Positions 13,576 through 55,602 of a DNA stretch of 64,000 nucleotides are shown in pieces. Below the pieces are notes generated by a model. The model was not told the origin of the DNA. It ran no database searches and saw only the letters and a program-made list of their open reading frames with translations. The stretch's first letter is position 1. Each line of letters begins with the position of its first letter. Made by a program: the position numbers and the translations under genes. The stretch is taken from positions 25,296,142-25,360,141 of the forward strand of contig NC_068984.1 in NCBI RefSeq assembly GCF_001194135.2, in the 5' to 3' direction. This stretch comes from Octopus bimaculoides. Taxonomy: Eukaryota.

Positions 13576-16269
13576 CTAAAGGTAGTATATTTCCACAGAA
13601 ATATGATAACAAAAGAGTTTAAAGATATTTCTTAAAAATTCAAATTTCAAAAGAAATATTTTTAAAATGGGCCCCATAGACATGACAGAAGTATTTATTA
13701 TAAACAGCTGTTGTGAATATCACTGCTCAACTCAACAAAAACTCTTAAATTACAGAAAGATTCAATTTCTCTCCACTTGGTCAAAACAAAAAAAAAAAAC
13801 AAAAAAAATTAACACTAAAGGTCTTCAGTATCACATGGAATATGACAAACACTGATTTAAATTTCTCACTTCAGTCATTACAATATTTAACTCCAGGTCA
13901 TCTCCAATTAAGGTCCATAATCAACAACATTCCAACCATAAAATTCCTGTATTTTTCCAAGCCAGTGTACTTAGCGCCCAGACAGCTGAATGTGATTTGA
14001 AGGAAATTCCTATTCTATTTCTCACATAGTCTCATCAGTATCTTAATTAATATAATGCTGTCAGTCATCATCATTTAAAGTCTGCTTTCCATGCTGGCAT
14101 GGGTTGGATAGTTCAACAGGAGCTGACAAGCTCAATGAATAACAAACACTATTTAAATGATTATCAACATAAATGACAAGAATGTTCAATGCAACAGGTT
14201 AAATATTTAATGACAGAATCAAATAAAAGACTTTGAAGAACCTTCTAAAACATTGGTGTTTCCAAGTTGTAAAAAAGTAACTACTCAACGATCACCTTAT
14301 CATCTGGAATCTATTAGTCAAGTTTGAACAAGACCATATCTCTCATGTGTATCTTGAATTATCTCATCTATAAGACCGAATTTCTTCACTTCGGATCCCA
14401 AGATTTATTCACTCTCTCTGCTCCTCTCTTCCATGAACTAATGGTGCTTTATTCATTTAACATTCACCAAACACAAGCGCACATACATTATATGGCCATA
14501 CCAGACATTCATACCTCTTGAGTCTACTGTGATTAATTTTCCAAATTTCATGTGCTAAATCAATCTTATAAGTTTTATGTTACAAAATCTGCCTTCATTT
14601 TTGTCATTCCAGGTGTAAGTCTCTTACGAGTTGATTGCCGTTAAAAGAAAAAGGAATTAATCAGATAGCAAATATTGTTTAGCTTTGATTGTGGATTTGG
14701 TAATCTGTTTATTAACAAAAACAGAATATCTTAACATGTCTGTTTCCCCTTCATTAAAGAAATCATTATTTAAGAAGAACACTAAGTCCATTAATGAAAT
14801 AAGATAAATTATATGAATATTTAGTTTTACTCAAACAAAAATTAGTGTTTACTGATAAGAAAACACTTATTCATTATTAAGTTTGAAAGCAACAAGAAGA
14901 TTCCTGATTTACAGACATTTTAGAATGTTATTCCAAAACTCCAGTTGCTTTCTATGGAATGTGTTTATTAAAAAAAAAATTAATAATGATAAAATTTAAT
15001 AGAAATTCTTTAGAAATTAGGCTCATTGGTAATCTTTATAATCCTTAGTCAACTGTTATATATGAAATATGTCAGTTTTATATGAAAGTTAGTAGACAGG
15101 GGAACATGCACTCAACCCTAAAACAATTCAAGTTTGGTGCATTCATTCACACACATGAAAGCAGTCATGCACACACACAAAAAAAAATTAAGGGAAAAAC
15201 TAAAAGAAATGTAAAGTAATAAATAGGTAAAACTTTAATGGAACCCAATTCCACTACAGAATATCTCCCACCAAAGCAAAACAAAAAATAATAATTCTAA
15301 CGACAATAGAGAAACAACATGAATGTACACAAGTTATTTCTGTTGTTTAGTTTAAAAGAAACATCATCACCATCACAAAATTTCATTATGGATGCAAAGT
15401 GACTAATAGGAAGAAAGTTGAATGATTTAGCATATTTTACCATCCCTCACACTTATCTAAATTGCTTTTTGTTATTGTAGATCCACAGAAGGAACCAATA
15501 ATCTAAAGTCTCTAGCCCATAACAGGTCCATTTCGAAGTTGACTTTCAGTTTCAGTTTCATTATTGATAATTGGAGTGAAAATATACATGTTAAAGCTGG
15601 TACCTTAAAGTCTGGTGTTTGAATCCAAAAAGTGGGGGAGGGGCATAAAATAAGAATAATATTTCATAAACCTTATCACTGTGTTATTTTCATTTCCAGA
15701 CAAAATAATCTACAAAGGGAGGGAGGGAAATTTACACGTTTGCATATATAGGTTTACACGTGTTTTTTAATATATGTTTTGTTTTATTGGAGGTTTTCTT
15801 TTCTTTCTTTTTTTAACTAATACCTATGTTAGTGAAAGATTAGTTCATTAAATCTAGAATGAGGTAATGGTGTTGTTCAAGTAGCTATCAACTAAGAACT
15901 GCACTGCACCATTTTAGAACTACATCACCACCTAGACAAAAGGACTGCACTGGAAAGTGATAGCAAAACAATAGCATAATTAAAATTGGCACAAACAAAG
16001 CTTTGTAATAAAAAAAATATATATTAAAAAATTAAATATGTTTAAAAATATGACTTCCGTATAGAAGACACTAATACTGGTAACTACGATTGTGTACATT
16101 CAAATGACAGAAAGGAATTAAGAATAGGATATTAAAAAAGAAATTACAACAAAAAAAGGCTCTTAAAACGGAACTGACAGAACTGGTATGAAGTCCTAAG
16201 TTCGACAATATTAGTCAAGGCTGATAGCTTTCACACATCAGCGCATCAGATAGCCAAACGCTAACTCGA

Positions 16270-16800
16270 TGACGTCAGCTTTTGTCATAAAAAAATAATT
16301 AAGCAGGGTAAGATGAGGTGGGAGTTATAGTAGAGTAAAACACAAAGCAAGTTTAGTCAAACAATATTTCTATTTCCATAATTAGAGAGAGGGGGAGAGG
16401 GAGAATGAGGTTAGTAATTCTCGTGCTCTATTTCCCTTTGATATGGCATCAGTTTACTTCGAACTACCTCCCTCTCCCAGAACAACGAGGAACATTAAAC
16501 TACACACATTTTTAATTGTTCTGGGATATATTTTTATAACGAGGACATCAGTCACGATAACAGGACCGTGATGATTAGCCGTAATCGGTGAGTTTCTCTA
16601 AGGAGGTAATGTTCATATTTTACTCAAGAAAATTACATAAAACTAACACCGCGACAGGAGACAAGTGTGATAGTTGTGACGTCATTGTCAATCATCAACT
16701 TAACAGTGACGCGTTGACAATCTAATGTCATAAGGTGACCCAGATTGTAGTGACAAATGGCCGAGACTGAAAACCTTGACAGCAACGATGACTGAATCCG
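16270..16800. promoter_or_regulatory. CRE / TALE-homeodomain motif cluster in a CpG-retaining patch
   Basis: TGACGTCA at 16270-16277 and 16677-16684; TGATTGACAA (minus strand) at 16685-16694; about five TGACA/TGTCA within 16686-16780; TTACATAA near 16633. Confidence 0.5.
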
Positions 16801-17599
16801 GTAACAACGACTATGATACTCTTCTTTCCCATTAACTTTAAAGAAGCCTCTTAATTGTTTTAAAAGCCCTTCAGATTACACATTTCTTTGTAGACTAACA
16901 AGAGAGGGAGGGGTGTAAAATTGCAGGACCAAATGAACTCACGCATCAATATCTAATGATAAGTTGTATTTTAATCTCAGATTATAAAATAGAGATAAAA
17001 GTGTGTCCAAGAGAATTCTGGGAGATAAACACATAAAAGATTAAAATATTTATATACATAACAAGGTGGTGCGAATTGATAAAACAATATCAGGCTTAAA
17101 TAAAGCATGCAAAAATGCACGAGGAGACGTTTGATTTAAGGTTACGTTGCTTACAGTATGAATTAAAATTTTCGATCAGAAAATAAAACAAAGAAACTGG
17201 TCGTCCTAAGTACTTGAATAGCGTACAAGGTTTCACAAGAGGACTGATTTAAATCATTTCTATTTGTAACGAATTAAAAAGCTTGGTGAGATTTCAGTGT
17301 TTGATATGCAGAAATGAAAACTTATCTCAGGTTCCTGTCAGAACTGAGAGATATAAACATGCCAATCGTATATATATGAATTTTAAAAAATAAATGCTGA
17401 GAAAGCTGAATGGAAAAATATTTTTAGCGAATCCCATGCATTTTAATAAATTCCAAGCTTACAAGAAGCAAAATAGTAAAAAGTCGTAAAACCAACAAAA
17501 GGTAAATAAATAAACGAATAGAAGCTAGTGATGCTGGTAACCATAAAATAGTTCAGTTCAAAAAAAAAAAAATCCTATCAGGTTGATTCCTCACCACCA

Positions 17600-18419: not shown

Positions 18420-18858
18420 TTTATCATCATTATCATCATTTAACGTTTGTTGTCCATGCTGAGGTTTGACCAGAGTTGACAAGCTGGGGAGCTGCACCAG
18501 ACTCCAGTCTGATTTGCTATGGTTTCTTTGGTTGGATGCTCTTCTTAATACCAACCACTTTACAGAGAGTGCAGAATGCTTTCTTTCATATAGCACTGCA
18601 TGGGTGCTTTTACGTGGTGCCATACGGGCGCTTAAAATGAGGTGTTCTTACTCGTTGCCAGTACCGCCTGACTGGCCTTCGTGCCGGTGGCATGTAAAAG
18701 CACCCACTACACTCTCAGAGTGGTTGGCGTTAGGAAGGGCATCCAGCTGTAGAAACTCTGCCAAATCAGACTGGAGCCTGGTGTAGCCATCTGGTTTCAC
18801 CAGTCCTCAGTCAAATTGTCCAACCCATGCTAGCATGGAAAGCGGACATTAAACGACA

Positions 18859-20091: not shown

Positions 20092-20452
20092 TCTTTTACT
20101 TGCTTCAGTCATTTGACTGTAGCTATGCTGGAGCACCATGTTTAGTCAAAGAAATTGACCTTAGGACTTATTCATTGTAAGCCTACTACTTATTTCATCA
20201 GTCTTCTGCCGAACCGCTAGGTTACAGAGATGTTAACACACAAACATCGGTTGTCAAGCAATGGCAGGACACACACACACACATATATATACAACAGACT
20301 TCTTTCAGTTTCCATCTACCAAATCCACTCACAAGGCTTTGGTTGGCCTGAGGTTATAGTAGAAGCACCTGCCCAAGATGCCACACAGTGGGACTGAACC
20401 CGGAACCATGTGGTTGGGAAGTAAGCTTCTTACCACAGCCATGCCTGCACCT
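20092..20452 (-). mobile_element. tRNA-derived SINE family A, full length
   Basis: Complete body from tcttttacttgcttcagtcatttgactg to ccacagccatgcctgcac; the reverse complement has A/B-box-like gtggtaag and gggttcagtccc. Confidence 0.85.
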
Positions 20453-22907: not shown

Positions 22908-23212
22908 ATCATCATCATCGTCGTTTAACGTCCGCTTTCCATGCTAGCATGGGTTGGACGATTTGACTGAGGACTGGTGAAACCGGATGGCAACACCAGG
23001 CTCCAATCCAATTTGGCAGAGTTTCTACAGCATATATATATACACACACACACACTATTTATTTATATATACATTGAGGACTGGTGAACCAGATGGCTAC
23101 GCCAAATCAGATTGGAGCCTGGTGTAGCCATCTGGTTCACCAGTCCTCAGTCAAATCGTCCAACCCATGCTAGCATGGAAAGCAGGCGTTAAACGATGAT
23201 GATGATGATGAT
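22908..23212. mobile_element. Inverted pair of SINE family B 3' ends with an internal 26-bp foldback
   Basis: Minus copy 22908-23031 and plus copy 23101-23212; 23075-23100 is the exact reverse complement of 23124-23149. Confidence 0.9.
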
Positions 23213-24210: not shown

Positions 24211-27200
24211 ATAATAATAAACCTAGATAGAATGTGAACTGATGACAAGAAAGGCCAGAATGTTCAACAGATTCTGCCAACTCCTACTCTTCAAGAAATG
24301 AAGACTAAAAAAAAAGTAATCAGTTTAAAAAAATATACACAAGGTAATAAAATCTAAAACTAGCCATTACAAGTTTATAGAACATAATATTTAATAACTC
24401 GGGATAAATTTGAACATTTGCCTTTACAGAAATTAGGAATTTATTTTTGGCCTTTATGATGATGATGATGCACTTTCTAGACTTATAACCTATCATAAGA
24501 CCACATTGTTGTTGTTGTTAAGCCCTAGGCAAGGCCTGATCAAGTTAATCTATGATCAACAGTATTCCAGCCATAAACATGTCTTTTTTTCATTCATTCT
24601 GTACTTTCAGATTATCTTATGTAATATGTCTTCTTTTTTTTCTTTTTCTTTTTTAAAGACAGTAAGGTGTAGTTTCAAAAATAGGCTGCTGTTTCTAGTA
24701 GACTGAATGACCACTTAATTGGCTTATAAAAGTATGTAAGACCTGAAAACACTCAGTGTACATTACTTTTACTTTTTTAAAATCAAAAAGCAATCAATTT
24801 CTAGGTCAAGGTTTTCAACTTTTATACTGCATTAATCAATAAAGACTTTATTACTCCAAAATATTTGCACAACAAAATTAAAGAGATCAGAAGCTCTTCC
24901 ATGAATATTGTGGTTTTCCCATAATTCTAAATAAAATTGGAAAATAAAAACCATAATGAATTCAAATATTAGGAAATAAAGATTGGATCCACTCTCCTTT
25001 ATTCACATTGTTAAACAATAATCTTAGTAGCTCTTCATAGTTTAAGAATATGGAGACAAGAACTAGGTTTACATAAAGAGCCAATCATCACCCACAAACG
25101 AGTAAGGTTTGGTAACAATGCATCATGCTTTCAGTAATTGTTTTAGCTACCTATGTAGCCCCAATTAGACACAGGCACCCTTGTGGCTCTCCCATCCTTT
25201 GACCCAACAGCACATCCAGAATGTGGTGAGAGCAGAGAGACTGCTCCGTCAACACTAGGCTGGCACTCATTTTCAGCTGAGCAAACTGAATGTGAAATGA
25301 ACTACTTTGCTCAAGGACACAATACACTACTTGGGCCTGAAATTAAACCCGTGACATTATGATCATGAGCCAAATATCCTAACCATTAGGCCATGCACCT
25401 TCACTGAAGGAAGGGCAGAAGGAAGGATCAATAATTTAAACCAGTGATTCTTAATCTTTCTAAATCTATAGCATATTGGAGATGAAAGTGGAGGGACAAA
25501 ATTACTGGTGTATTTTATATTGGAAGTTAACATTTTACTGGTGCACTTCATGTGCATGAAAAACTTTTGAAAAGCTATGCTTTATAAAAAGCACATTTTT
25601 CAAGATACTTAAACATTCATATTTTCTAAACCCTTAAATTATATATTTTTTAAAAATCTGTGGTGCCCTGTTCAAGAACAACTGATTTAAACCATTAAAT
25701 TACAAATAGAAATTTCAAAGAGGTTAGTAATCTTAAAAAATAAATTTTATAAAAAGCAAGCTAAAATTTAGAACTGCTAGATAATTCGCTGCACTAGGAA
25801 CAATCTTCAGATACATTTAAGAAAAGGGATGCTGTGGCATTCATATCTTCCCAAGTCTAAGTTACATATGTGAGATGGTTACAGCTAAGAATCAAACCAA
25901 GTTGTAGACTACAAGTACAGAAAACTTAACAGCACAGAAGGTATTATTTCATGTTACTAAAGTCAGCTAACTCTACTTGCCTAAAACTCATTACTTAATC
26001 ATTAAAAAAAATTGTAACTACTACAAGTTTGTGCTGGTGCCACGTAAAAGCACCCAGTATACACTGTGGTGTGGTTGGCATTAGAAAGGGCATCTGGTCA
26101 TAGAAACCATGCCAAAATAGACAATTGGGACATGGGTAGCTCCCCTGCTGGCCAGCTCCCATCAAACCATCCAATCCATGCCAGCATGGAAATGTGAACG
26201 TTAAATGATGATAATGTTGCAGCAATATTATTTCATTAAATACAATTTGTATATCATCTCTAGTTTAGTTTATTCATTTATATCCTTACAAAAAAAAAAA
26301 AGAATGGCTTCCAAAATTTGTCTTTCTCATCCTTTTTAACCAATACCGCCCATATCCACTATCATTTTAATGCCAACTTTTCCATGCTTGTATGGGTCAG
26401 ACAGAAAGCCTGCCTCAAAAAATTTTCTCAGTATTATTGAATTAAATAAAACTATTATTTTCAGGGAATTTACAAGCAAATATTTTAATTTTTGCCCAAG
26501 AAAACCAAATATATTTTTATTTCATTTTTTAAACTAGTAATTAAAAAGGCAGCAAGAATTAATAAAACAAAAATAAAAACTAAAAGCTGATTTTTAGTGT
26601 TTGAAGTTTATCTGACAACTCAACAATAGAACATACTGGAAGAGCCGAGCCTAATGGATTAAAATAATAATAAGAATAATGCTTTAAAGGAAAATAAAAC
26701 CTGTCTGTAAAAACAAGTACCTTGTTTTTATTATATAGTGCAACTTAAGTTAGAAAAGTTTCAGAAGAAATGTAACAAAGGTGGCTTTCCAAACCCACAC
26801 CATATTGTTCATTGTTCCACAATTTATCTTGTCAACTTGCCAGCTCCTTAGATTAGCTAGCTGCTCATTCAAGTTGCTAATTCCACAATTTAAATCAACA
26901 TTGTTGTCTTTCAAAGTGCATATCAAAATTGGCACCAAATACATCTTAGCATTATATAAAATGATTTCCTGAAATATCTTTTTTAATTATAACTGGGGTT
27001 TTTTGGGTTTTTTTTCATTCACTTTTTTTTTTTTTTTTTTTGAAAAAAAGTTTTAAGAAATGAAAGTAACAACTTGGAAAGATCAGAGAACAAACACACA
27101 AAGAGTAATTTTGTTTTAAATAAATATACTTTTGATAAATTGGCAACAATATTCTTTTATCTTTTACTCGTTTCAGTCATTGGACTGCAGCCATACTGGG

Positions 27201-27709
27201 GCACTGCCTTGAAGAAGTGTTTTAATGGAACAAATCAACCACAGTATTTTTTTCTTTTTTAAAGTCTGGTACTTATTCTATCAGTCTCTTTGCTGAAGTG
27301 TTAAGTTACAAGTACATAAATGAATATTGGCTGTTTAACAGTATGTTTGTGAGGGGGCAAACAGACACAAACACATACACACACAATGGGCTTCTACACA
27401 GTTTCCATCTACCAAATTCACTCACAAGGTATTGGTTGAAGCTCAGAAGTACAAGCTAATGAAACACTCCTCAATTATTCTACATCCAAATTTCAAGTAG
27501 TAAAAATCTATATCTATTTTGTAAACATTTACAGATGAGCCTGGGCAGAGTTAAAGAGCTTTGCTAAAACACAGCCCAGCACTCAATCAACAGTGACCAT
27601 TCAATTAGTAGGACTCCTGCCTGTTGACTTAATGAGTTCTAGCTCGTCATATAAACATGAATATTGATGTCACCACTTGCACAAAAGTGATGGTGTCAAC
27701 ATTCCTTAC

Positions 27710-28142: not shown

Positions 28143-29361
28143 CGTTATTACTATGTAAGAAAAATCATTATTGCTCATTTGCCATAAATTATTTTATTCT
28201 TTGTGTTAATGACTAAAGTAATTGAAAAAATTATTTCCTGCACACTTTCTCGGTACATGTCATAAAAGACTACTATAATTACAGAAATATTCAAATGTAA
28301 TTCTACTTAGAATGTTGAAGATTATAATGATTAAATAGTTAGGATTCTTGTCCACAGAATAATCTTGCAGAAATAAATTAAATTAGCACACCCATGATGA
28401 GCCAATAACTTTATATACTGCTTAGTTACAATTTATATTATTAAACCTAATATAACGGAGTCCTCTAAAATAAACAGCTATTTATAGGAAATGGTAAGCA
28501 TTTCTTTTCATTAACAGTCATTACAAATGAATGTATGCTTCATTACTAGGAACCGCAAAAAAGCTGTAAATTGAAGTAACATTTTTGTCATTAGCAATTG
28601 ATACATACACTTTATCAAAAAACAAAACAAAAAATATTTCATGTAGGTTGAAAAACTAAATCAACTTTTATAAAATTTCAACTCAAATAACTACAGAATA
28701 TCGAACTCACATTTTTACCAACCTACCAAGTTTTTACCTTTATAAAGTATTCAGTTTTAGTTTTAAAAAGTTATAGAGCAGTATTATCACTTATCAAAGT
28801 AAGCTCCATGACTATTAAGAAGCAAGGTTATAAAACACTTAGAAAATTCAATTCAAGATTAAAACATCTTGACCATATGACCTCCTAAGTAAGCTTATAG
28901 CATAGATAAGATGATTTTAACGATCTTCACAATATGGGGGCAAATCATGATTTTTGTTATGGTATGTGAATAAATCCTGTTTCAAAACTGTTTTCGTCGT
29001 CGTCGTCATCGTTTAACGTCCGCTTTCCATGCTAGCATGGGTTGGACGATTTGACTGAGGACTAGTGAAACCGGATGGCAACACCAGGCTCCAATCTGAT
29101 TTGGCAGAGTTTCTACAGCTGGATGCCCTTCCTAACGCTAACCACTCAGAGTGTAGTGGGTGCTTATTTGACAACAGCCATGCTGGAGCACCGCCTTTAG
29201 TCAAACAAATCGACTCCAGGACTTATTCTTTGTAAGCCTAGTACTTATTCTATCAGTCTCCTTTGCCAAACTGCTATGTTATGGGAATGTAAACACACCA
29301 ACATCAGTTGTCAAGCGATATGGAGGGAGGGGGCAACCAAACACACACACACACACACATA

Positions 29362-29415
29362 NNNNNNNNNNNNNNNNNNNNNNNNNNNNNNNNNNNNNNN
29401 NNNNNNNNNNNNNNN
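29362..29415. other. Assembly gap (N run)
   Basis: Seen directly. Confidence 1.
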
Positions 29416-29444
29416 TATATAGGCTTCTTTCAGTTTCTGTCTAC

Positions 29445-29698
29445 CAGTTACCTTTACTTGCCTAAAACTCATTACTTAATCATTAAAAAAATCATAATTA
29501 CTGGAAGTTTGTGCTGGTGCCACGTAAAAGCACCCAGTATACTCTGTAGTGTGGTTGGCATTAGAAAGGGCATCTAGTCATAGAAACCATGCCAAAATAG
29601 ACAATTGAGACGTGGGTAGCTCCCCCTGCTGGCCAGCTCCCGTCAAACCATCCAATCCATGTATAAGACTCGCCCGAGCTAGTTCATTATCCCAATCC
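29445..29698. repeat. Local templated insertion (direct copy of 25964-26180 + inverted copy of 33085-33123)
   Basis: Manual alignment: about 14 substitutions and 2 indels over about 217 bp for the first part; 2 mismatches over 39 bp for the second. Confidence 0.9.
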
Positions 29699-30894
29699 AA
29701 GGCTATAGTAGAAGATACTTGCTCAAGGTGCCACACAGTGGGACTGAACCCGGAACCATGTGGTTGGTAAGCAAGCTACTTACCACACAGTCACTCCTGC
29801 GGTGTTTTAAAAAACTTATTTAACTTACTGATGCTATTAAAGAAATGGGAAGAGAAACTAAGAAGGCTTCTGTACAAACATATGAAACCTCTTTTGTGCT
29901 TGGATTTTTTTTTTTTTTTTTTTTCAGTTGATTACTGAATATTTGACTAAAATTCAGCATTAATGTTAAAATAAACTTGTTGGTGCAAATTAATACTTTT
30001 AGAACTAAATATTAATGCAATATCTAAAGGAAATTATTATCAATGTATTTTAATATATGAGGAACTGAATTTTCATACTATCAAAATAGTAGTTAGTACC
30101 TGGTTACTTATTTTGCAACATCAAAGAGAATTCACCAACATCTTTTAGGGTCTAAGCAATTAGAAATAAATAACTAAATAAACCCAAAACCATTTATGTT
30201 TCTAAGCAGCAGAATGGCTGTAAGCAGTTCCCAGGATCAGTGAGAAGTTGGATTAATGAAATGGCATTCCTGAGAAAGTTACTTTGTCAGTTTAAGTAAT
30301 TGGTTTAGAGGAAAGCTTGTTCAAAACTAAAATGGCTAGCAACATCCACATCACACTGTAAGAGGCTCAAAGACAGAAAAAGGAAGTGAGAGAAGGTAAA
30401 AGAGAAAGTAGGGAGGAATGAAAAGCAGAAGAGAAATGTAAGAGAAAACGGGTGGGGGTAGTTAGTGTGTAATATGATGGGGTAAAAAATGAAACCGACT
30501 CTTTGTGTGTCACCTGTTTTATATATTCCCTTTTCAGTTTAGTAGCAGATGCAACCCTTAGTGAGAAATAGGCAGACAATTCCCAAACCAGTCAGGTAGG
30601 GAGGAAGGGAGATAGAGACGAAGTTGGCCCTGTATATAGAATAATGCTGCTATTAAAGTGATAACGAGACAAACGAAGAATGCTTGTTACATGTGCATGC
30701 ATGTGAGCACCTTTCTTGCTTGGATTTTTCAATTGATTATTGAAATTCTGTTTTAAAAAACAAAAAAACTGGAGTACTGCTAATTTTAGATGCACAGTTG
30801 ATATTTACAGTAAAATAAATGCAATCAATGATTAAAGAGAATAGTTGAAAATAGTGGTGTAAAGAGAAGGAAAGTTAGTTGCAAACTTTGTACA

Positions 30895-30896
30895 TT

Positions 30897-30929
<33 letters not shown>

Positions 30930-31150
30930 TATTCATATAGTATATGCATCTACTCATATATAGTTATATATATATAGTTTATATACATATATTTATATAT
31001 AGTATATATTCATATATAGTATACATATATTTATATATAGTATACATATATTTATATATATTTATATATAGTATATATACAGATATTTATATATAGTTTA
31101 TTTATATATAAAGTTTATTTATTTATTTATATATAACTATATATATAGTT
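30895..31150. repeat. (TG)n/(TA)n followed by an AT-rich about 20-bp minisatellite (tatatagtatacatatatt-like)
   Basis: Seen directly. Confidence 0.9.
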
Positions 31151-32807
31151 TTAATTACACCGAGTAAGACTTCTAAATGTAAGAAAGCATTACTTCTTTA
31201 AACTTGATCAGTAGTTCCTAAAGTGAAGTCGTGTTAATTTCATTACCGAACACTTCGTGTCAACAAAATGGATTTGGCCAGTGCAAGCTGGGACTGTCTA
31301 GTGTTGACACACGCACACACAAAACATCACGGGAAATAGGTTAAGAGCACTTGTCAAAGGATCATGACAGCAATATTTACATGGGAATATTTGGATACGA
31401 ATATATCATCATGTGTTACAAATGCGCTTTGGAAAGGCATGAATATCAGAGCTAAGAAATCCCCGGTAACGGTACATTTTGTGCCTTTGCAAAGAAAAAA
31501 TTATTAATAGGAAAATAATACGAAAACTATGTAAAATTATAGACATGAAACAAAAACTAGAAACTTAATGAACATTCAGTATAAGAAACAAAAAGTATGT
31601 GTGAATATATATAGAAAGAGTATGTGTTAGAAACTGGGAGTCTAAGAATTAAAATCTAGGCACCATTTTGATGCATGCAGTCTATGTAACAAGACTGTTT
31701 TTGCTTTTATGCTATCATTAGAACTTCCTCGATTCAGTTATATTTGAGACTGAACATCAGCAAATAATTCAAGATAAGAGGGCAAAGAGATGAAATGTAA
31801 AAGAGGAGAGAAAGAAAAAGGGATGAGTGCTCCCTAAAGCACATCGAAACATCTTCCAAAACAGAAAGAGAAAGGGAGAGAGAAATGGGTAATTGATGTA
31901 TGTCATTAAAACTATAAAATCAAATCCAGTTATTAGATATAGCTTTACTCAACCTTTATATGTTGTGTATTTCTTTTAAAAATAGTTTCGTAAAAAAAAA
32001 AAACTGAATCCAATTAGAATAACTACTAAAATACTAACGTAAGATTACCAAAAGGTAATATTAAGTCCGAAAAGAGAGACATGAAGCGAGATCGTAATAA
32101 GACCAGACGTAAACATTCTCAACACATGAGAAGAAAGATAAGTGACATGCCACGCTATCGCAAACAAGGCGTAAAGATATTGAGTATTAAAAAAAAAAAA
32201 CAGAAATCAATCATCTTTAATGTCGGGCTATTGCTAAATATCACCGACATTTATAGTGTAGAATCGGGTAAATCAAGGGGTGAAATACGCTTATGAGACG
32301 ATTTCTGGAGAAGAAGAAAAATGTAACTCGGCAAATTTTTATAAAGTAATTTTTATTTAAGGACTACTGATAGTTCTTCCGTTTTTTTCTTTTTTTTCTT
32401 TCATCAACCTTATAGAGATGACTGCACGATAATTTAATTTAGATCTTCCAAGTGTAAGCCATCAATCTAAATATTGTGAAATATCTAGTAAGTAAATAGA
32501 TTTAAAAAAGAAAAAAAAAGCAGTTATTACTTGCTACAGAAATTCATAGGAAAACATTAATTAACAGAGGAACTCTTTGTGTGTGTATGTTTCCGCTGTT
32601 ACAGTTCCCCCTGAGCTACGACTACTAATCGTGAAAGAGAGAGAGAGAGAGGCCAACAATATAATCTATAGAAATATGACAGGCAGTTGTAAAAATATAC
32701 AATATGTAGAAATCAGAAAAAAGTTTGTATTGTTACAATGAGTTTAATTAAAATGGTGAAAGAATAATTAAAATCAGTAGTTATTGATTAAAGATGTATA
32801 TACATAC

Positions 32808-32832
32808 CTTTTGAAGAAGTGCTTGCTTCCAT
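32808..32832 (-). CDS. Putative first coding exon MEASTSSK(G), phase 1, of an unidentified gene
   Basis: ATG GAA GCA AGC ACT TCT TCA AAA G|gtatgt. It lies about 185 nt downstream of a promoter-like segment in the most CpG-retaining part of the window. Confidence 0.45.
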
Positions 32833-33009
32833 CCCAAGGAATAATAAAAACAAACGTACGTAAAACAACGAATGTGTGTATATAAATATATAGTATATAT
32901 CCCGCGATGAATGTTTTAAAAAAACAAATGAACACAAAAACAAACTAAATTGCGATTAATAATAGTTTTCCTTTGGTTTGTAAAATGTACCGAGTTTGTC
33001 TGTAGTGCT

Positions 33010-33125
33010 TGTGTGTATGAGGCTTGTCAAACAGAAGCGAAGCATGCATGATGTTAGGGTGGGTGTTTACAAGAGAGGTAATAAGGATTGGGATAATGAA
33101 CTAGCCCGGGCGAGTCTAATACAGA
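33010..33125 (-). promoter_or_regulatory. Putative core/proximal promoter for the minus-strand transcript
   Basis: On the minus strand: CCAAT at 33087-33091, GTAAACA forkhead-like at 33064-33070, CACCC box at about 33056-33065 and Inr-like TCATAC near 33018. An E-box CCACGTGG lies near 33520. Confidence 0.45.
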
Positions 33126-35498
33126 ACAGATGCCCAGGGATGTTAGAAGGCAGTAGGACAACGTCTGCTGTGCAGCATTTTACGTGTGTTATGTTCATGC
33201 ATTTACTTTCTTTTTTATAAAATGACTAATTTTGAGAGGGAAAAATTATTTTAATAGAAAAAAAAACTCGATTCTTAAGTAATAAAATTCTATTGACTGC
33301 GATCGTCATTCAAGACATACTTTCTCCGACAGACAGTTTCAGTAATTTTAGATGCCTTATTCCTTATTGTGCTCCAGTTTCGTTTCCCTAAGTATATATA
33401 TTTTATTTCACCAAAAAATCTATGTATAATACTTTCGTCTCATTTTCCGCTTTGAGCTTATTCTTAGAGATCACTGTTTAGGTTAGGAAGTCGCTGTGAT
33501 ATAGCGAATTCTTGGAACCTCCACGTGGTCACTCGACTTCCTAGAAATAAGAGCCAAATTCCTCCAAATGAAACCCTACTGTCTTAAAAAAAAGTACAAC
33601 TTGGACAATGTATATAGATCTACTCGACAAGAGCTGACCTACAACAAATCAACAGAGACATCTTATTGTGGACGTTTAGTTAGAATCTTTCACTTATTTT
33701 TGTAACTAAAGCCTGCACAAACAAACATCACAATTACATATCTCTCCACACCACCACGCCACCATCCTGCCTCAAAACAATTTGAGGTATTCTATCTATG
33801 TAAGAAACAAATGTTTATTCTGCTATTGTTGAATTTTCCTTCATACTAATTAATTTCATAGACTATAATCAACAAAATACGAGTGTGACAAGTCAAAAGC
33901 AATTAAGTGTTCGGATAAAAACACGTAAATATTACGGTCACTACACTAAACTTAAGCCGTTATCAAAAGTACACAAGGTATTATGACAGTGAAATTAGTG
34001 GCGTGGGGAGGGCCAAAGTGACGGAGGTAAGGAATACGTACACCACCCGTTTTCGGCGTAACAAAAACCCTAACCACCTAGTGTACGTATTCTTTACTTT
34101 CGCCGCCTAGATTTAATACGAAAGGTATGAAGAACCATAGAAAACTTGAATAGCATGGTGCCTTCGTAATTATTCCAATTAGTAAACCATACATGAAGGA
34201 AAACAAAATATTTCTTACGCAGGCATAATCCCTATGATTTCAGAGGAAGAGAAAAATAGGAAACTGAAATACACGTTGTTCCCAAAAATATTAACGACAT
34301 AAAGGGAACTGGCACAAAGTGGGTATCGAATTCACGTCCCGGACTCAACTTGCTAATAGCTTTATGTTTATCTCCCAGCTTTCATCCTAATGAACAAAAC
34401 TCATTTATTTTCCCGCAATAATTATATATAGATGTCAATGTCATTAGTTTGTGTTTCTATAAAGATTCATCTACACCCCGTGTCTCTCGAGCACTTCATA
34501 ATGTTGCCAATCCTAACAAACGTGATAAAATGACAAAAGAATGCTTATAAAAATTGATATTAAGAAAATTTCTAGACTATAATATATTAACAGACAGAGA
34601 TAGATAGATATTTCATCAAAAGGATGGTTCACGGTGTGGAACTGAAATCAACGTTGCATAGCAGCTTTCAACGATTAAGCAATATTGCTAAAAAATAAAT
34701 AAATAGAATAAAATATCTAACACAGTTTTCTCTAAGTTACATTTCATTACCATTAAACATAAATATATGCAGACAAAAATGTGTGTGTGATACAAATAAT
34801 TAATCCTTAAAGTTAATTATTCAGAGACCATTCTATGAAAATTAAGCTTAGTATTAACATATATAATGTAGTGAGCATGAAAATCTAATTAGAAACATTT
34901 AAATGAGGAAAAGACCTTAGCTCAGTGACTAATAATATTTTAATCATTTAAGCAAGTATGAGAGACAACCTAAGGGTATGTTTCATTCTTATTAGACCTC
35001 CTCAATGGAACCTATTTTAGCATAGCTCTGAAGCAGTGATGAGAGAATCACTGAATATCACAAATACATGTATGTATGTAACAATCTAAGACAAACCAAT
35101 ATGGAGATTCTATGTTCACTGGACCAGATAGATATAGCAGCCAAATTTCTTACAAATCACATTTTGCCCTCATAAAGAGGAAGTGCACATTAGGAAATGA
35201 AGTCATAGATATATAAAATGATAAGATAGTAATAATAGCTGGATTGTATAACACATCAGAAGTAAAGTCTTCTGTGAGTTCATTGGATCTGGGTGAAATT
35301 GCAGTTAAATTACCCTCAAATCTTATCACTCTTAAAAACAGAAGGGTATGGTGAATAATGTAACTCTAGAAATACTAATCTTGAAAAAGAAATAGGGTGG
35401 TTTCAATCAGAACACCTTAGATCATATATCTGCTGAATCGAGACTGATCTAGGGCTTAGCAAAACTACTAAGGTTTATAGTCATGTCATCATTGCCTT

Positions 35499-36624: not shown

Positions 36625-38959
36625 TACACATTTGTGGACAAGCATTATGAAAAGGACACTGATAATTACATATATTAAACCCCCTCATAAAAACATTTCA
36701 TTCATAAAACACCCAAATATTCACAAAACCAAGCTGGTAGAGCAGTAAATTGCAAAGGAATGCAGGATAAAATGCTCAGTTATTAATATAAAATTATGAC
36801 AATGTGAAAGACATCCGGTTTTAAATAAGTATTGAATTACATTTTTCATGTATTTCTATGTAATTAGTTTATATTCTAAGAATTTTCTTGATATTAATTT
36901 GGAAAGTGCAACACTGGCACTAACTTTACCAAACTTAGATTCCAACAAATCTTACTGCAAAATATTTTCAGCTAAGTCATTTATTTATTTATTTATTTAT
37001 TTATTTTAAAGCAAAAGGCTTTAGATATGCTAATCCCAGACAAAATATCTTATATTTCTTTCCTGATGTTATTGTAGTTTAGTTCTAGATCAGCCATGAT
37101 TGAGCAGACAAGCCTATAGTCAAAGACATACCAGCTGTGACCATCCTGCTTTTTTTCCTATGACAAAGCAGTGAGGTGGGATTTAAGGAAGATTTGACAG
37201 CTATTTCTAGCAGATCAAACGACCTTCCAAAGGCTCCTTAATTTTCAGATGTGGAGACGGGGGATAGGGGTAGGAGTTCCTCTAACTTTATTTTATTGAT
37301 TGAAAGATGTTTGATCATTAATTTTGAGGATCAAAAATGTCAAGGGTTAGATCATGATGTTAATTCAATTAGACTAAAATATTTCAGAAACTGAAAAACA
37401 ATAAATATTTCCTCAATAAATGTCATCTATTGAAGAAGTAAGGAGCAAGCATTTAATTAACAAGTATGATCAGAAGCCTGTTCTAACTACTCAACAGACC
37501 TAAACAATATTTGTCAATTTAAAAAAATAAAATCAATAACAGTGAGTTTGAAGCGGAAGATAAAATAAAATTATTTCACTTCTTATCAGTCAACAATTCA
37601 GCTGAAATGGAAAAGAAATCCTGTCCTAAGAAATGTCATCATCAGCATTTTCCATGCTTTCAGATTCAGTGAGACAGATTTTCTACGGCTGGGTGCTCTA
37701 CCTATCACCAACCCTCACTTGTTTTCAGGTAGGTAAAGTAATATTTCCCCATGGCCAGACATGTTCTCACAGAATACTGGAAATGAATGACACTGCTTGT
37801 ATGACAGTGACATTCACAACTATCGTGCGATATCAAGACAATGAGACACAAGCACATACACACCTATATACACACACATACGCGCACGCACACACACACA
37901 CACACGACAGGCTTCTTTCAGTTCCAACTACCAAATCCTCTCACAAGGGTTTGGTCTGTCCAGGGCTATAACAGAAAACACTTGTCCAAGATGCCATACA
38001 GTGGGGCCAAACCAGAAACAGTGTAGTTGGGAAATAAACTTCTTATCACACAGCCATGTGCGCACCTCATAGCTATATCCATCTAATCATCATTATACCA
38101 CCATCACTAGTCGTACTACTATTAGTACACAGGTTGTTCAAAGTCACCTTTGTATTCTTTGTAGATAAATTGAGACTAGAAAAAAAAAATCAATGCTCAA
38201 GCTGCAATGGAGTTAATAAGAATACTAGAATGTTCACATGGATAGAATTTTTTTAAATGGTTTGAGGGCAAACATCAATGTATCTATTCTAATACGTAAA
38301 ATTACCCATCACTAACCCTAGCCACCATGTACATACAAAATAGACTGTCAGAGAAATGTTATCGAACTTGAGGAGCTCTATAACAACGAAGTAACCATGT
38401 TGGATGTGTAAATGTCAGTCTAAAAAGGATACTGAGTTGAGATGAGCTACAAAGGTATTTAGAAATAAAGAGCAAAAACAAAAAAGAAAAAAAAATTTTA
38501 TTGTGTTTTGTTTTTAAGGTATTAATCACACCAGTATGTAGGTTTTTACTTAGGTATAGTTTGTAACCAAATAGCTACCTGAATAAGTACTATTTATAAG
38601 GCAAAGAGATTAAAAGGGGGTTTGGAGAGAAAAGAAAATACGTATACACAGCAAGAAATTTTTTTTTTTTTTTTTTTTTTTTTGCTGCTCACTAACAGAG
38701 CTTGAACATTTCCGTAGTAGATATTTAAAAAAGAAAACAAAAGATTTAGACATAGATTTAATAATGAAACTAAAAGATCAAATAAGTGCACAACATTAAC
38801 AGATATCAGCATGGTATTTTTTGAAGACTTAATATTTACTAGAACAAATATGTGTGTAATGACTACAATACAAGACTGGATTTTTCAGCATCCTTAGTTT
38901 GGTTAGGTTTTAACTTTCCTCTCCAAGGTGAATGAAATCATTACCAGTAATGTATTGGA

Positions 38960-42025: not shown

Positions 42026-43455
42026 ATGGTTACAGAAAAATAGCTTAATGTAAATACAAAATTCATAAATTATCTTTGTCCTGAAATTGCAAGACAGAAA
42101 AATCTGTCAATATTGCCATGCTCAATTAACAGGCTTCACTGTTTAATTTGATCTGAACTTAATGATATATATATATATAACCATCTTTCTGTAAGCATTT
42201 GTAATATGGTTAAAGAGATGGCTTAATGAAAATAAAATGAAATGTTAAAAAATTATTCATATCCCAAGATTAAAAGACAGAAAATTTCTAAGAACTGTCA
42301 TGCTTAAATGAGCAGTCTTCACTGTTTGTCTTGATCTGAACTAAATAACATAAACAACAAGAGCACTCAGAGAGTGCAAACCTCCACCAAGGCAATATCA
42401 ACGTCCTCCTAACAATTAGCCAGAAATGATTTTTAAAATGAGACTATCTGAAATAAACTTGACTGCTCTCACAAACGAGAATACTAAAAATGAACCCGAC
42501 CGCTCTCAAAGATTAAGTAAAAAAAAAACAGAAAAATAATCCAGAGTCTTTGTCCAGTACCTCATCGATCCCAATGGTAGTCATGGAATGTGAAGGTGGC
42601 TGTAGAAAATTTAGTGACAGTAATAAATAGTTTATCCTTATCTAATACAGTCCAAAGTTAATAAATTCACCATTCAAAATAGTTTCAAAGGCGGAGGTAA
42701 TAATAATAAGTTCTACTTAGGAATTTTTAAATGAATAGCATGAGACCTTTTGGTTTTCTCTTAAATTCCAGCCTTCCTTTAGTATTCCTGTTGTTTTAGA
42801 TCGATGTTTAGAAGTATGTATATATGTAAGTATAATGTAGTGTTAATATGTATGTATAATATATATATTATAAAAATATGTTAGTGTTATTTAATTTCTG
42901 AATGGTTTTGCTGCCATTTGTTTATGTAGTTTGATTTCTTTATCCATCAGTTTCTACTAAGATAGAGATGTGAGTAAAATTAATAATAGAGAAATAAAAA
43001 TAAAACTTTGGAAACAACCTAAAGGGAGATAACTGAGAAAGACTTGAAAGTCAACGTAAGATCATAATCATGCAAAGTAAAGTAAATATAACAAATAATC
43101 CAGAATCCTTGTCAGGTACCGGATCAATACCAAAATCTAATCAGTTCGTGCCAGCCATGAGGCCAAACATCCCTGAAAGTTTCATCTGTGTCCATCCAGC
43201 AGTTCTTGAGATATCTTGTCCACAGACAAACAAACAAATACAACTGAAAACAATACCTCAGCTTTTGCCAAGGTAGAGGTAATAACAGAGTAAAGCATCT
43301 CTGTAACCATATGCAATTTCGTTACAGTAACGGTTTAATGAAAATAAAAATAAACATTTTTTTAAAAATTTGTATCCTTAGATTGAAAGACAGAAAATTT
43401 CTAAATACTGATATGCTTTAATGAACAGTCTTCATTGTTTAATTTTATCTGAACT
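42026..43455. repeat. Three diverged copies of an about 135-bp unit (42026-42159, 42206-42342, about 43315-43455)
   Basis: Shared core aagacagaaaat..atgct..aa..cag.cttca.tgttt....t.atctgaact; copies 1 and 2 have a 180-bp period. Confidence 0.8.
42356..43285 (-). mobile_element. Helentron-associated (HINE/DINE-1-like) non-autonomous elements: one at 42356-42703 and a partial one at about 43080-43285
   Basis: Terminal hairpin GCACTC-aga-GAGTGC at 42363-42377 next to subterminal repeat acctccaccaaggc; opposite ends aaggcggaggtaataa and gccaaggtagaggtaataa. Confidence 0.7.
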
Positions 43456-44750
43456 TTTGTTTTTAATTGATAAATTAACTTTTCAAAATAAGTTAAATCT
43501 GGTTGGTTATCTGTTTAAAATGTTTGTTATAATTAATGAAATTACACATTTCAAGGCATGCTCTGGCCTAAGGCATACATGCTATTTCCTCTCTTTGTCT
43601 ATTTTATTGTGACAATAACTTCTGTTCCTTAGAACTGACCAGTTTGTACCTCTTCTATTTTGACAATCCTGCCCTGCTCATCTCTCTCTCTCTTTCTCTC
43701 TCTACTCACCCCTTGGGTATGCATCAACATACACAGTTCTATATGTTCAAACTGTACTACACTTCTGTGTTGTGATATTTATGAGGCAGGTAGTTAGGGC
43801 TATGGCAGAACCGGTAGGATACTAAGACAAACAGTCTAGTAATATTTAGTTATATCCCTTTACATTCTAAGTTCAAATTCTGCTGGTGTTGATTTTGTCA
43901 TCCTCCTGCAGAATATGTGACTCTGGCAAAGTTAAAAATTATTATCATTCTTATTCTCAGAGTCAATAAAAATGTCTTCTTTTCCACACACGCATATAAA
44001 ATATCTCTAAATACTTTGTCAAGTTCACTTCAAGTCTTATTTACAATAAAATGAATATATAAAATGTATATTGAAGATCAGATTTATTATGGTTTACTCT
44101 TCAAGTCTTAACCTTGAGTCATAAATAATAATTAATCTAAAACATTCAGAATATCAACTTCTAAGAAATATGAAATGAGTTCTGTGAAATAATTAGGTAA
44201 CCCTCTATGTTCTGGATTTAGACCCCACTGGATAAATATAAAATGAAAAGTAAAATAAATAAGAGTAAAACAGATCATGGTTAGATACTAAGATATAAGA
44301 TTATTGTCAATAACAAGACATCTCTAGCAGAGTCTGTGAAGATACTCTTGTCTGTAGGACAATAACAGCATTCATTAGAAAGTGAAACAAATATTCCTTT
44401 ATCTATTAGCTTCTGTGGATCTTCTTATTCATTGCTGCTGGCGCCAGATGACGCCAAAGGGCATCTCTGAAAGTTGTTTATTATTTTGGAGAGAGAGAGA
44501 GAGCAGTGATGCTAACCAAAAGAATTCTACATATCAAAGGAGGTAGTATAATATGATTATTTCAAATTGTGTAGAGTACAAATTCAGTGTGAAAGATTAT
44601 AAATTTCTCTTTCAAAAAGAATGTAATCTTGAGGTAAAATATTTCTAGGCTACAATTTCTACTGAATCAATTCTCTGACCTGACTTAAGCTGAGTGTAAA
44701 TAAATAGTTTTGAAATACAAAGTATGCATAAGGCATTTTGTACTCAATTA

Positions 44751-50880: not shown

Positions 50881-53424
50881 AAATTTTAATTCGAAACCTA
50901 AAATATCATAAATATGACATGCTATTGAGAAAAGAGAATTAGGATCAGGAGAAAAAAAACACTTGCATATCTTTCTTGGAGTCTTGTATAAAAATAAGAA
51001 GGAGGACAGATCAGCACCTAAAGTTACAAGTCATCTTCAAACATCTGTCATACCAAATGAAGATAAAAGCACTCTAGAAATAGCATAAGTTTTAATAAAT
51101 GTATATTCTCTCTTATATAAACACAAACTTGATTTTGCATTTTACTCTAATCTATGAATGGCTAAAATGTTAAATTCAACTAAAACTTTGCAAAAAAAAA
51201 AATAGAAAAGAAAAGATGCCATGCTTTTATTTCATTATCCAGAACACTTCACATAAAACAGACACCCAACAAAAAATAGTGTATGCATGTTATAGTGAGC
51301 TTATGTGAAATTACTTTCAAATAACTTTATTGACCTACAAAAAAATGTGTTGAATGCTCAACCCTTCTTCCTCTCCTCTCCCCTCTCTCTCTCTCTCAGC
51401 TGTTGTGTCAATAGGAAACAAAATTTAGAATTTACATCTGAAAAATATAAAATATCACAGTCACTGGGATGGGGGAATCCATTTATTGGTATTTTAATCC
51501 TCATATAGCAAAGTATGACATATTTTATAACTTAGGTTTAAACCATTTTGTCTGACAATACATACAGTCACAGTTCTTATCTCGTCTGCATACAGTAGGA
51601 AACGGAGAAGAAACAACAGAATTGGTTACCAGTATCTTTTATCTTTTACTTGTTTCAGTTATTGGATTGCAGCTATGCTGGGACATAGCCTTGAGTACAG
51701 ATATAACTACTAATGAATGACAAATATTTTGACAAAATAAATAAATATCTGATGTTACGAGATCCAGGAGCAATCTTGTCAAAGAGAAATAATTGTGTTA
51801 ATCACCTTCAGTACATATTCCTGGAACTGAGATGGAAGATATTCAATGTAAATAAACAAGCTACATCAATTACAATTAAAATTAATTGATTCTAATTTAG
51901 GTGCAATGCCAACAATTTGGAGGAAGGGGCCAATCAATTACATAAGCACCCAATATTTGACTAGTATTCTATTTTGTAGACCACTGATGGAAGAAAAGCA
52001 AAATTGCCCACAGTAGGAAAGCTTTGCCTTTCATTCCCTCTGGGAAATTGAACTCGGAAAACAATGCCAGGAAAAATAATACCACTAAGCATTTTGCTCA
52101 GCATGCTAACAATTCAACCAATCCACTGCAATAATAATAGGAAATCAACATACCATCATGAAAGAAAGAAAAAGGGTTGATAAATATGGAGACCTGAGAA
52201 TTGAGATCACTAAGATGTGGCAGCTATGAGAGTCAAACACAAAGATTGTCTCTATTGTCATCAGAGCACCCAATGAAGAAAATGAATGACACTGCTTATA
52301 TGACAGTGATACTCATTTACAACTATCAGCCAAGTCAATTCAAGGAGGGTGGGAGAGAAACACACACACACACAATGGGCTTCTTTCAGTTTCCATCGAT
52401 AAAATCTACTTACAAGATTTTGGTTGGTCAGGTGTTCTTTCTAAAAAAATAAGCATATCAAACATTAAAGAGGAGAATGGGAGAACTTAGTTATTTCCTT
52501 ACTGGACAAAATATTGAAATTCAGTATCAGAAGAAAGATTTGAACACATGACCCTTTAATAAAAGGGTATATTGTACTTTGTAGAGCTATATAGAAATAT
52601 ATATTAATAAGTGTCAGTTTTCTCATGATTTCTGAGATATTAATTCAAGAAAACATCATCAAATCATGAGAAATATGATTAAGGGAATTGAAATGAGGAA
52701 AATTATTGGAAACATAATATAACATTAACAAAACAAATAATAATGAAAAGGTAACAATTTTACATGGATACAATAGATCATAATTTTGATTTATAACACC
52801 TTCCCAAACAGATAAATTGTAACTTACGTATGCAAATATAAAAACAACTCAACATATACACACTTACATAATATTACAATACATACACAAACACACATAT
52901 ATGTAAAACAGAGACAAACACAGACATATGACTAACATTTTATTTCATATAAACATATATATTAATATAAACATGAATTTATTATATAAGTGCTATAAAC
53001 ACTTTATCATCTTTATTTTGGCAACAGTTCATTAATCACCCAGATACTAACCTTCATACACACACATACACGTAAATGCATGCACACACACACTTGCATA
53101 CACACATACACTCACGTGCACACACACACACACTTGCATGCACACATACACTCATATGCACACATACAATGGTTGATTAGTTTCTGTAAGTGTCCAAAAC
53201 TATTGAGAAACCTAATAAGCTAGGTTACTATTTTTTTCCTATTTAATCCGTCTAAATTAATAACGGAGACATTTTAAATGTATTATTCGATAATAAGTTG
53301 GAGAGGCCAGGGTAAATATTAATAGTTTTGCAGACTCCTTTATACACCAACTAATAATAATATAGAAATAAGATAAATCTTCACATATGCATTCATCCTG
53401 AAACGTTCTTGTTTGGAGACAGAC

Positions 53425-53880: not shown

Positions 53881-53932
53881 ATTGTAGTTTGTTAACTGCT
53901 CTGGTTCCTTTTTCAATTCATTTTGAAAAAGT

Positions 53933-54210
53933 TGCCAGTACCCCTGGACTGGCCCTTGTGCAGGTGGCATGTAAAATGCACCATTTCGAGTGTGGCCGTT
54001 GTCAGTCACCCATCTGACTGGCCCTCGTGCCGGTGGCATGTAAAAGCACCCACTACACTCTCGGAGTGGTTGGCATTAGGAAGGGCATCCAGCTGTAGAA
54101 ACTTTGCCAAATCAGATTGGAGCCTGGTGTCGCCTCCTGGTCCACCAGTCCTCAGTCAAATCGTCCAACCCAAGCAGACGTTAAACGATGACGACGATGA
54201 TGATGATGAT
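53933..54210 (+). mobile_element. SINE family B with (GAT)n tail
   Basis: gccagtacc..gactggccc..aaaagcacccactacactctcggagtggttggc..ttaaacgatgacgacgatgat. Confidence 0.85.
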
Positions 54211-55344: not shown

Positions 55345-55602
55345 GCCGTGACCCGACTTTTCGTCCAATGTCACTTTGTCCAACGTCACTTCGTCCATGT
55401 CTTTTGGTCCAAAGTCTTTTTGTCTGATGATCTTTTTTAATTTTTGTCCAATAAACTCTTTAGAAAACAAGGTGAACATCAAAATCAAATAATCATTGAG
55501 AATTTTACTGATAGGATTTGTCGTCTGACAAAAAAGTCATCAGACAAAAAGACATGAACGAAAAGACATTTGATAAAGTGACGTCCGACAAAAACACAGC
55601 AC
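55345..55602. mobile_element. Foldback-type MITE with long inverted arms built of about 15-bp subrepeats
   Basis: Left arm gtccaatgtcacttt/gtccaacgtcacttc/gtccatgtcttttg pairs with the right arm; atctatt direct repeat at 55338-55344 and 55603-55609. Confidence 0.8.

Follow-up and report, generated by a model that had tools for sequence, protein, structure and literature searches.

How does a SINE come to be split by DNA that matches sequences on either side of it, and by what route did that DNA arrive? The question is raised by one copy of a family that we call SINE A in the window, by which we mean the whole stretch of octopus DNA analysed here (Octopus bimaculoides, 64,000 nucleotides). A sequence-only reading of the window had claimed that this copy is cut after ...ctgtctacca, that about 29 bp of it is replaced, and that the replacement was copied from two nearby donors, one taken directly and the other inverted. 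Alignment of the element with eight other copies of SINE A bore out the cut and the loss, and BLAST of the window on itself bore out the deletion with a two-template insertion.

Against the eight other copies, homology is lost after ...ctgtctacca (29446) and regained at aaggctatagtagaag (29699). While an intact SINE A reads ...ctaccaaatccactcacaaggctttggttggcc.agggctatag... across the break, the interrupted copy is missing the consensus stretch aatccactcacaaggctttggttggcct, which is 28-30 bp long (∼29 bp). Within the window, BLAST matched the left side (29166-29319) to 20111-20262 at 80.5% and to six other copies, and the right side (29700-29787) to 20351-20437 at 89.8% and to further copies. 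The insert starts ∼30 bp from a run of Ns, the region adjoining an assembly gap. The gap is flanked by (CA)n on the left and by tatata followed by ggcttctttcag on the right, an order that matches other SINE A copies, so the two halves belong to a single element. There is no target-site duplication at the insert; instead, the ∼29 bp of host sequence was deleted.

Table. Positions in the window of the interrupted SINE A, the two templated blocks, their donors and the block of CpG-rich sequence around donor 2.
Feature	Position	Strand	Remarks
Host SINE A, whole	29166-29793		Basis: alignment with eight other copies and BLAST of left side
SINE A, left part, to internal (CA)n tract	29166-29361		Contig end within microsatellite
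N gap	29362-29415		54 N, inside SINE A (CA)n(TA)n microsatellite
SINE A, gap to left junction	29416-29446		31 bp; end = ...ctgtctacca
Templated block 1	29445-29661	+	Direct copy of 25964-26180; ∼55 bp unique flank + first ∼162 bp of SINE B
Templated block 2	29660-29698	+	Reverse complement of 33085-33123; ends CCAATCC
SINE A, right part	29699-29793		Restarts at aaggctatagtagaag
Donor 1	25964-26180	+	25964-26018 unique; from ∼26019 slightly 5'-truncated SINE B
Donor SINE B 3' end	26181-26219	+	ccagcatggaaa...gttaaatgatgataatg; absent from block 1
Donor 2	33085-33123	-	Copied inverted; unique in window besides block 2
Repeat-free block around donor 2	31001-34750		CpG not depleted, o/e 0.90; GC 32%; 3.7 kb

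The neighbouring SINEs show several features of their own. A SINE A copy at 27160-27438, between donor 1 and the break, ends ...caaggtattggttga without the part that matches 29699-29793, and motifs resembling an A box and a B box can be seen by eye in the reverse complement of that part. SINE A is therefore probably read from the minus strand, with the copy at 27160-27438 truncated at its 5' end. Searches of the SINEs and of the surroundings of donor 2 with ARAGORN and Rfam gave neither a tRNA nor any other RNA family; sub-threshold mir-297 matches fall in a (TG)n(TA)n tract. A young SINE B on the minus strand (28994-29165, 94% to 18698-18856 and 22909-23031) abuts SINE A at 29166. The AT-rich strings at 28978-28990 (tgtttcaaaactg) and 29803-29816 (tgttttaaaaaact) are alike and might be a target duplication around SINE B plus SINE A, which would make the pair one composite insertion.

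The two pairings of block and donor were each recovered by BLAST of the window on itself and by an independent repeat finder, as the sequence-only reading had described them. Block 1 aligns with donor 1 over 218 columns at 92.7% identity (E 3.5e-88), with 14 mismatches (11 transitions and 3 transversions) and two one-base indels; at 7% divergence the copy is not near-identical. Block 2 matches donor 2 in inverted orientation at 37/39 positions (E 3.5e-12), the two mismatches being those noted before, and in a screen of the entire 64-kb window this 39-mer was the sole low-copy pair at ≥90% identity. Exact scans of a metagenome collection for the 39-mer core and flank found no match, a result with no bearing on copy number in the host genome. 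A homology search of protein collections with the ORF across the junction gave no match, SINE-derived ORFs included, and these collections have no record of that ORF or of the one across donor 2.

The window holds other low-copy repeats. Direct duplicates lie at 42079-42160 and 43375-43456 (81%, 1.2 kb apart) and at 37781-37824 and 52280-52327 (87.5%, 14 kb apart). An inverted repeat at 55375-55438 and 55530-55592 (arms of ∼64 nt, 83%, 92-nt spacer) is possibly a small foldback or MITE-like element.

Donor 1 comprises a flank outside SINE B that runs into a SINE B copy. This flank had been put at ∼65 bp; it exists, but the full-length SINE B start (gttgccagtacc...), set by three independent 5' ends (18653, 53997 and 53931, an internal duplicate), shortens it to ∼55 bp (25964-26018). 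Other SINE B copies are homologous to donor 1 only from ∼26028 on, and the 'actgg' at 29499-29503 is still B-derived. The flank occurs nowhere else in the window beyond block 1. Because the same flank/SINE junction is found at both loci, one shared SINE B insertion was their ancestor. The donor runs to a normal 3' end, while block 1 is missing the final 39 bp of SINE B together with its tail, and has no poly(A). The copy is thus a subset of the donor, and since the 3' end is present only in the donor, the direction of transfer was from donor 1 to the insert. For block 2, transfer from donor 2 to the insert is the parsimonious direction.

The foreign 5' flank, the 3' truncation, the missing tail and the replacement of host bases exclude a nested SINE insertion, and in this respect the earlier statement that block 1 is not a separate SINE insertion holds. 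The anatomy of block 1 is the opposite of that expected from target-primed reverse transcription. Copying of donor 1 halts inside the palindrome CCATGCcaGCATGG. A hairpin was considered as the cause of this stop, but its CCATGC/GCATGG stem of -4 kcal/mol reaches a z of only -1.5 and is kept as a lead only. Homology to donor 1 further left, weak by eye and with MAFFT, gave no BLAST match and was treated as chance. Elsewhere in the window, a SINE B copy has its first ∼52 bp tandemly duplicated (53931-53982 and 53998-54050, 85% identity).

The event is old. Divergence from the donors stands at 7.3% for block 1 and 5.1% for block 2, and the substitution spectrum of block 1 (transitions to transversions, 11:3) is ordinary. 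When polarised by other SINE B copies, block 1 is ancestral at 7 sites, where the donor is derived, and derived at 1 (an indel); 5 of the 7 ancestral sites come from polarisation against the SINE B copies and 2 were read from the actgg stretch. By retaining ancestral SINE-B bases the insert is a snapshot of an older donor, and this retention together with 7% divergence marks a real, old event rather than an assembly chimera of local sequences. The host SINE lies ∼10% from a crude consensus, compared with ∼3.6% per lineage for the insert; the host thus appears older, and a break after SINE insertion is favoured, rather than a chimera that arose with it.

The differences are unevenly spread, with 9/64 in the flank versus 7/153 in the SINE-B part (Fisher p=0.02), the flank sites being not polarisable and the polarisable ones mostly donor-derived. 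This flank excess and the lopsided derived changes (7 in the donor, 1 in the insert) may be due to chance, to unequal rates, to error-prone synthesis close to the junction or to a third copy. The lopsidedness could be a sign of an unseen third source.

Overlaps of about 2 nt (ca, tg and cc) had been assigned to the three junctions. The first two can be read directly, 'ca' between host and block 1 at 29445-6 and 'tg' between block 1 and block 2 at 29660-1. For random blunt joins, the probability of an overlap of at least 2 nt is 0.16 at one junction and 0.024 at both. The third overlap is ambiguous, anywhere between 1 and 7 nt with 'cc' as one possibility, depending on the bases that this SINE A copy carried before the event; an alternative reading matches the final 5-7 nt (ccaatcc) of block 2 to ccaaatcc of the SINE itself. 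At the left edge, the first 10 nt of block 1 (ccagttacctttact) match the donor at 7/10 positions, and given these 3 mismatches the junction could lie anywhere in 29445-29455. A search of the entire window found no better template for ccagttacctttact.

A short motif recurs at the block ends. Block 1 ends ...CCAATCCAtg, with the heptamer CCAATCC 3 nt from its end, and block 2 ends ...cCCAATCC. On both strands of the window, 128 kb in all, the heptamer has only 8 occurrences, and given its position in block 1, the chance that block 2 would end in it is, by a post hoc estimate, of the order of 1e-3 or less. The SINE A consensus at the break is ctaCCAAATCCActcac, where CCAAATCC resembles the heptamer. 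Extended by one base, CCAATCC(A) at 29652-29659 and 29692-29699 forms an 8-bp direct repeat around 32 bp unique to block 2. The same octamer resembles CCAAATCCA at the SINE break.

Taken together, these observations lead us to conclude that an ancient break in SINE A was probably patched by serial, microhomology-primed copying from nearby donors, in a process of the MMBIR/FoSTeS/SDSA-with-template-switch class. Both donors are still in place, which indicates copying and not cut-and-paste. The intact donors, 25964-26180 and 33085-33123, served as serial direct and inverted templates in cis, the direct one 3.3-3.5 kb upstream and the inverted one ∼3.4 kb downstream. The size of the 217-bp block, the distance of 3.3-3.5 kb, the mixed orientation and the return to the same locus point to this class and not to short-range polymerase theta. 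Nearby-templated DNA is a mark of replicative switching, and FoSTeS, MMBIR and serial slippage look alike at breakpoints (PMC4056370); the three appear inseparable from the sequence here. Germline MMBIR insertions built from several templates with microhomology are known from human genomes (PMC8421209).

From this scar we infer a trigger, an order of steps and a set of enzymes. The trigger would have been a germline double-strand break, or a collapsed or stalled fork, in SINE A ∼30 bp from the (CA)n(TA)n tract. On the top strand, the 3' end ...ctgtctacca would have paired by 'ca' at 25964, and 217 nt would then have been copied rightwards until template 1 was left within the short SINE B palindrome. 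The 'tg' would have re-primed synthesis on the opposite strand at 33123 for a further 39 nt, and rejoining to the other SINE A end would have completed the patch with the loss of ∼29 bp of SINE. A mirror-image order on the bottom strand would be equally possible.

The sequence-only reading had named polymerase theta and FoSTeS/MMBIR together as the source of such a signature. The signature of microhomology-mediated template switching is upheld; theta fits less well. In one alternative, polymerase-theta end joining (TMEJ) built the whole insertion by iterated priming and dissociation, and the 2-nt priming overlaps, the patchwork of segments and the small deletion are its hallmarks, with the 39-bp block near the top of the reported size range (PMC12426944). 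Minimal base pairing of the kind used in TMEJ is seen in the 2-nt overlaps. However, polymerase-theta insertions are generally <25 bp and templated by the flanks of the break (PMC12426944), while the blocks here measure 217 and 39 bp and their donors lie >3.2 kb off, so that we consider TMEJ unlikely as the sole author of the insertion. A different route would be templated by RNA, with local nascent transcripts reverse-transcribed at the break, either by an endonuclease-independent LINE reverse transcriptase or by template jumping of the enzyme during insertion of SINE A; on either account 25964 and 33123, where the blocks end, would mark the 5' ends of RNAs. As in L1 chimeras, the missing target-site duplication and poly(A), the target deletion, the 2-nt overlaps and the local donors are all compatible with this route, which would also account for where the copies stop. 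It nevertheless requires transcripts of opposite strands to converge on one site. The jumping variant is contrived, as the enzyme would have to re-enter the SINE RNA that it had left, ∼30 nt further along. The host SINE is also apparently older than the insert (∼10% against ∼3.6%). To RNA templating in all these forms jointly we assign only a slim chance.

Three further alternatives can be weighed. The local donors would be accidental if block 1 were an independent copy from a SINE-B subfamily whose 5' region is longer, and if the 39-mer belonged to another dispersed repeat, and SINE B is indeed abundant, with ∼10 copies in 64 kb. Such coincidence is highly improbable: three independent SINE B 5' ends leave the 55-bp flank outside the element, block 1 is 3'-truncated, tail-less, free of a target duplication and in place of host sequence, and both donors lie ≤3.5 kb away with neither sequence found elsewhere in the 64-kb window. 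The insert starts 30 bp from an N gap, and the assembly is repeat-rich and of short-read style, as would suit an artefact of assembly or gap closing at this end of the contig that starts at 29416. Mis-joins in an assembly graph should, from the behaviour of assemblers, need long shared repeats and not 2-nt overlaps, the 5-7% divergence from the local sequences and the ancestral states mean that the insert was not assembled from donor reads, and the SINE A halves across the gap fit a single element; an artefact is therefore extremely improbable. Equally far-fetched in our view is a history of two events, in which an insertion from donor 1 was sealed via CCAATCCA/CCAAATCCA and later received the 39-bp filler from donor 2 with a 23-bp deletion. 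This would make use of CCAATCCA as a direct repeat (29652 and 29692) around the 32 bp unique to block 2, and its first step would proceed without any deletion. On the other hand, the same site must be hit twice, the 'tg' that follows CCAATCCA belongs to the continuing donor 1 sequence and would be dropped by a join at the heptamer, and the similar divergence of the blocks (7.3% and 5.1%) fits one event.

Serial copying from nearby donors, the reading that we favour, can be compared with several known systems. Chimeric retrocopies and endonuclease-independent LINE capture leave no target duplication, a target deletion and short overlaps, as found here. The octopus insert differs from chimeric retrocopies in having no poly(A), in drawing its blocks from opposite strands and in the resumption of the host SINE after it. 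It resembles the MMBIR/FoSTeS templated insertions termed MMB-TI in its intact donors, serial direct and inverted templates, microhomology at two of its three junctions and small target loss (PMC8421209). Unlike the human cases of MMB-TI, it is accompanied by no large rearrangement, and it lies in a cephalopod-like, SINE-rich genome; unlike the MMBSearch class, in which inverted templates lie within 100 bp, its templates are 3.3-3.5 kb off and one of them is direct (PMC8421209). With TMEJ and synthesis-dependent MMEJ it shares priming by 1-4 nt, repeated dissociation and re-priming, and patchwork fillers, and the CCAATCC pattern fits their completion when new DNA matches the other end (PMC12426944; PMC2943611). 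A 217-bp block from >3 kb is nonetheless far outside the range of TMEJ, with its insertions typically <25 bp and its own-flank templates. Primate short-range template-switch mutations are likewise germline, fixed, replication-linked, templated nearby and seen by sequence comparison, but they span tens of bases, usually from one inverted local template (PMC7954356), while here two templates were used at kilobase range.

The sequence-only reading went further and placed the CCAAT box of a putative promoter in donor 2. The promoter remains putative: CCAAT/ATTGG has a density of 2.0 per kb across the window, and a search around donor 2 (∼33.1 kb) for a gene found no exon, long ORF, Pfam, tRNA or Rfam match. 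The further suggestion, that the donors are anchors of a chromatin loop and the insert a fossil of three-dimensional contact, is speculation from one case. The donor distances are indeed nearly equal (∼3.27 and ∼3.39 kb to the nearer edges), but these are present-day values, and further SINEs of comparable age lie within the intervals.

One observation speaks indirectly for the sequence-only reading. Around donor 2, at 31001-34750, CpG o/e is 0.90 versus 0.27 in the rest of the window, making this the only large undepleted block; donor 1 DNA is strongly CpG-depleted (o/e 0.13-0.16). A transposon origin of the block was considered and dropped, there being no terminal repeats (LTR or TIR) at 31001-34750, and searches of the same interval for ORFs, Pfam and Rfam gave no match. 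Its composition is compatible with germline-hypomethylated, accessible DNA at donor 2, and the block as a whole may represent a regulatory domain that is constrained or hypomethylated in the germline. On the left it adjoins a 243-bp (TA)n-rich tract (30905-31147). A second, smaller CpG-undepleted stretch is found at 16001-17000 (o/e 0.84).

Was the choice of templates guided? The heptamer pattern, which is new here, suggests guided template choice or homology-guided capture: copying may have ended, or the new strand may have been captured, once the nascent DNA matched the other broken end. Ending on such a match would, by analogy, follow the logic of synthesis-dependent microhomology-mediated joining. 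We found no single-step model that both uses the heptamer and gives the deletion. That template choice was non-random, as CCAATCC at or within 3 nt of both block ends, a near-match at the break and one donor in a putatively germline-hypomethylated block would have it, we regard as very unlikely.

In summary, the insertion is a single case and a clean example of a known repair scar, with no new mechanism. The scar is neutral, lying in non-coding, repeat-rich DNA, and it probably has no biological consequence. What gives it value is that it is a clean, datable natural example, in which the SINE consensus supplies the pre-event sequence and both donors survive.

Looking beyond this locus, the insertion indicates that repair from several templates at kilobase range took place in the germline of the octopus lineage. 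If interrupted SINEs were scanned systematically, the distance and orientation of donors, the microhomology and the chromatin state could be treated statistically. If non-random template choice were true genome-wide, the old cis-templated fillers in the numerous SINEs of cephalopods would record which accessible sequences were sampled by broken germline ends, and would provide a sequence-only proxy for past short-range chromatin contacts together with a homology rule for second-end capture.
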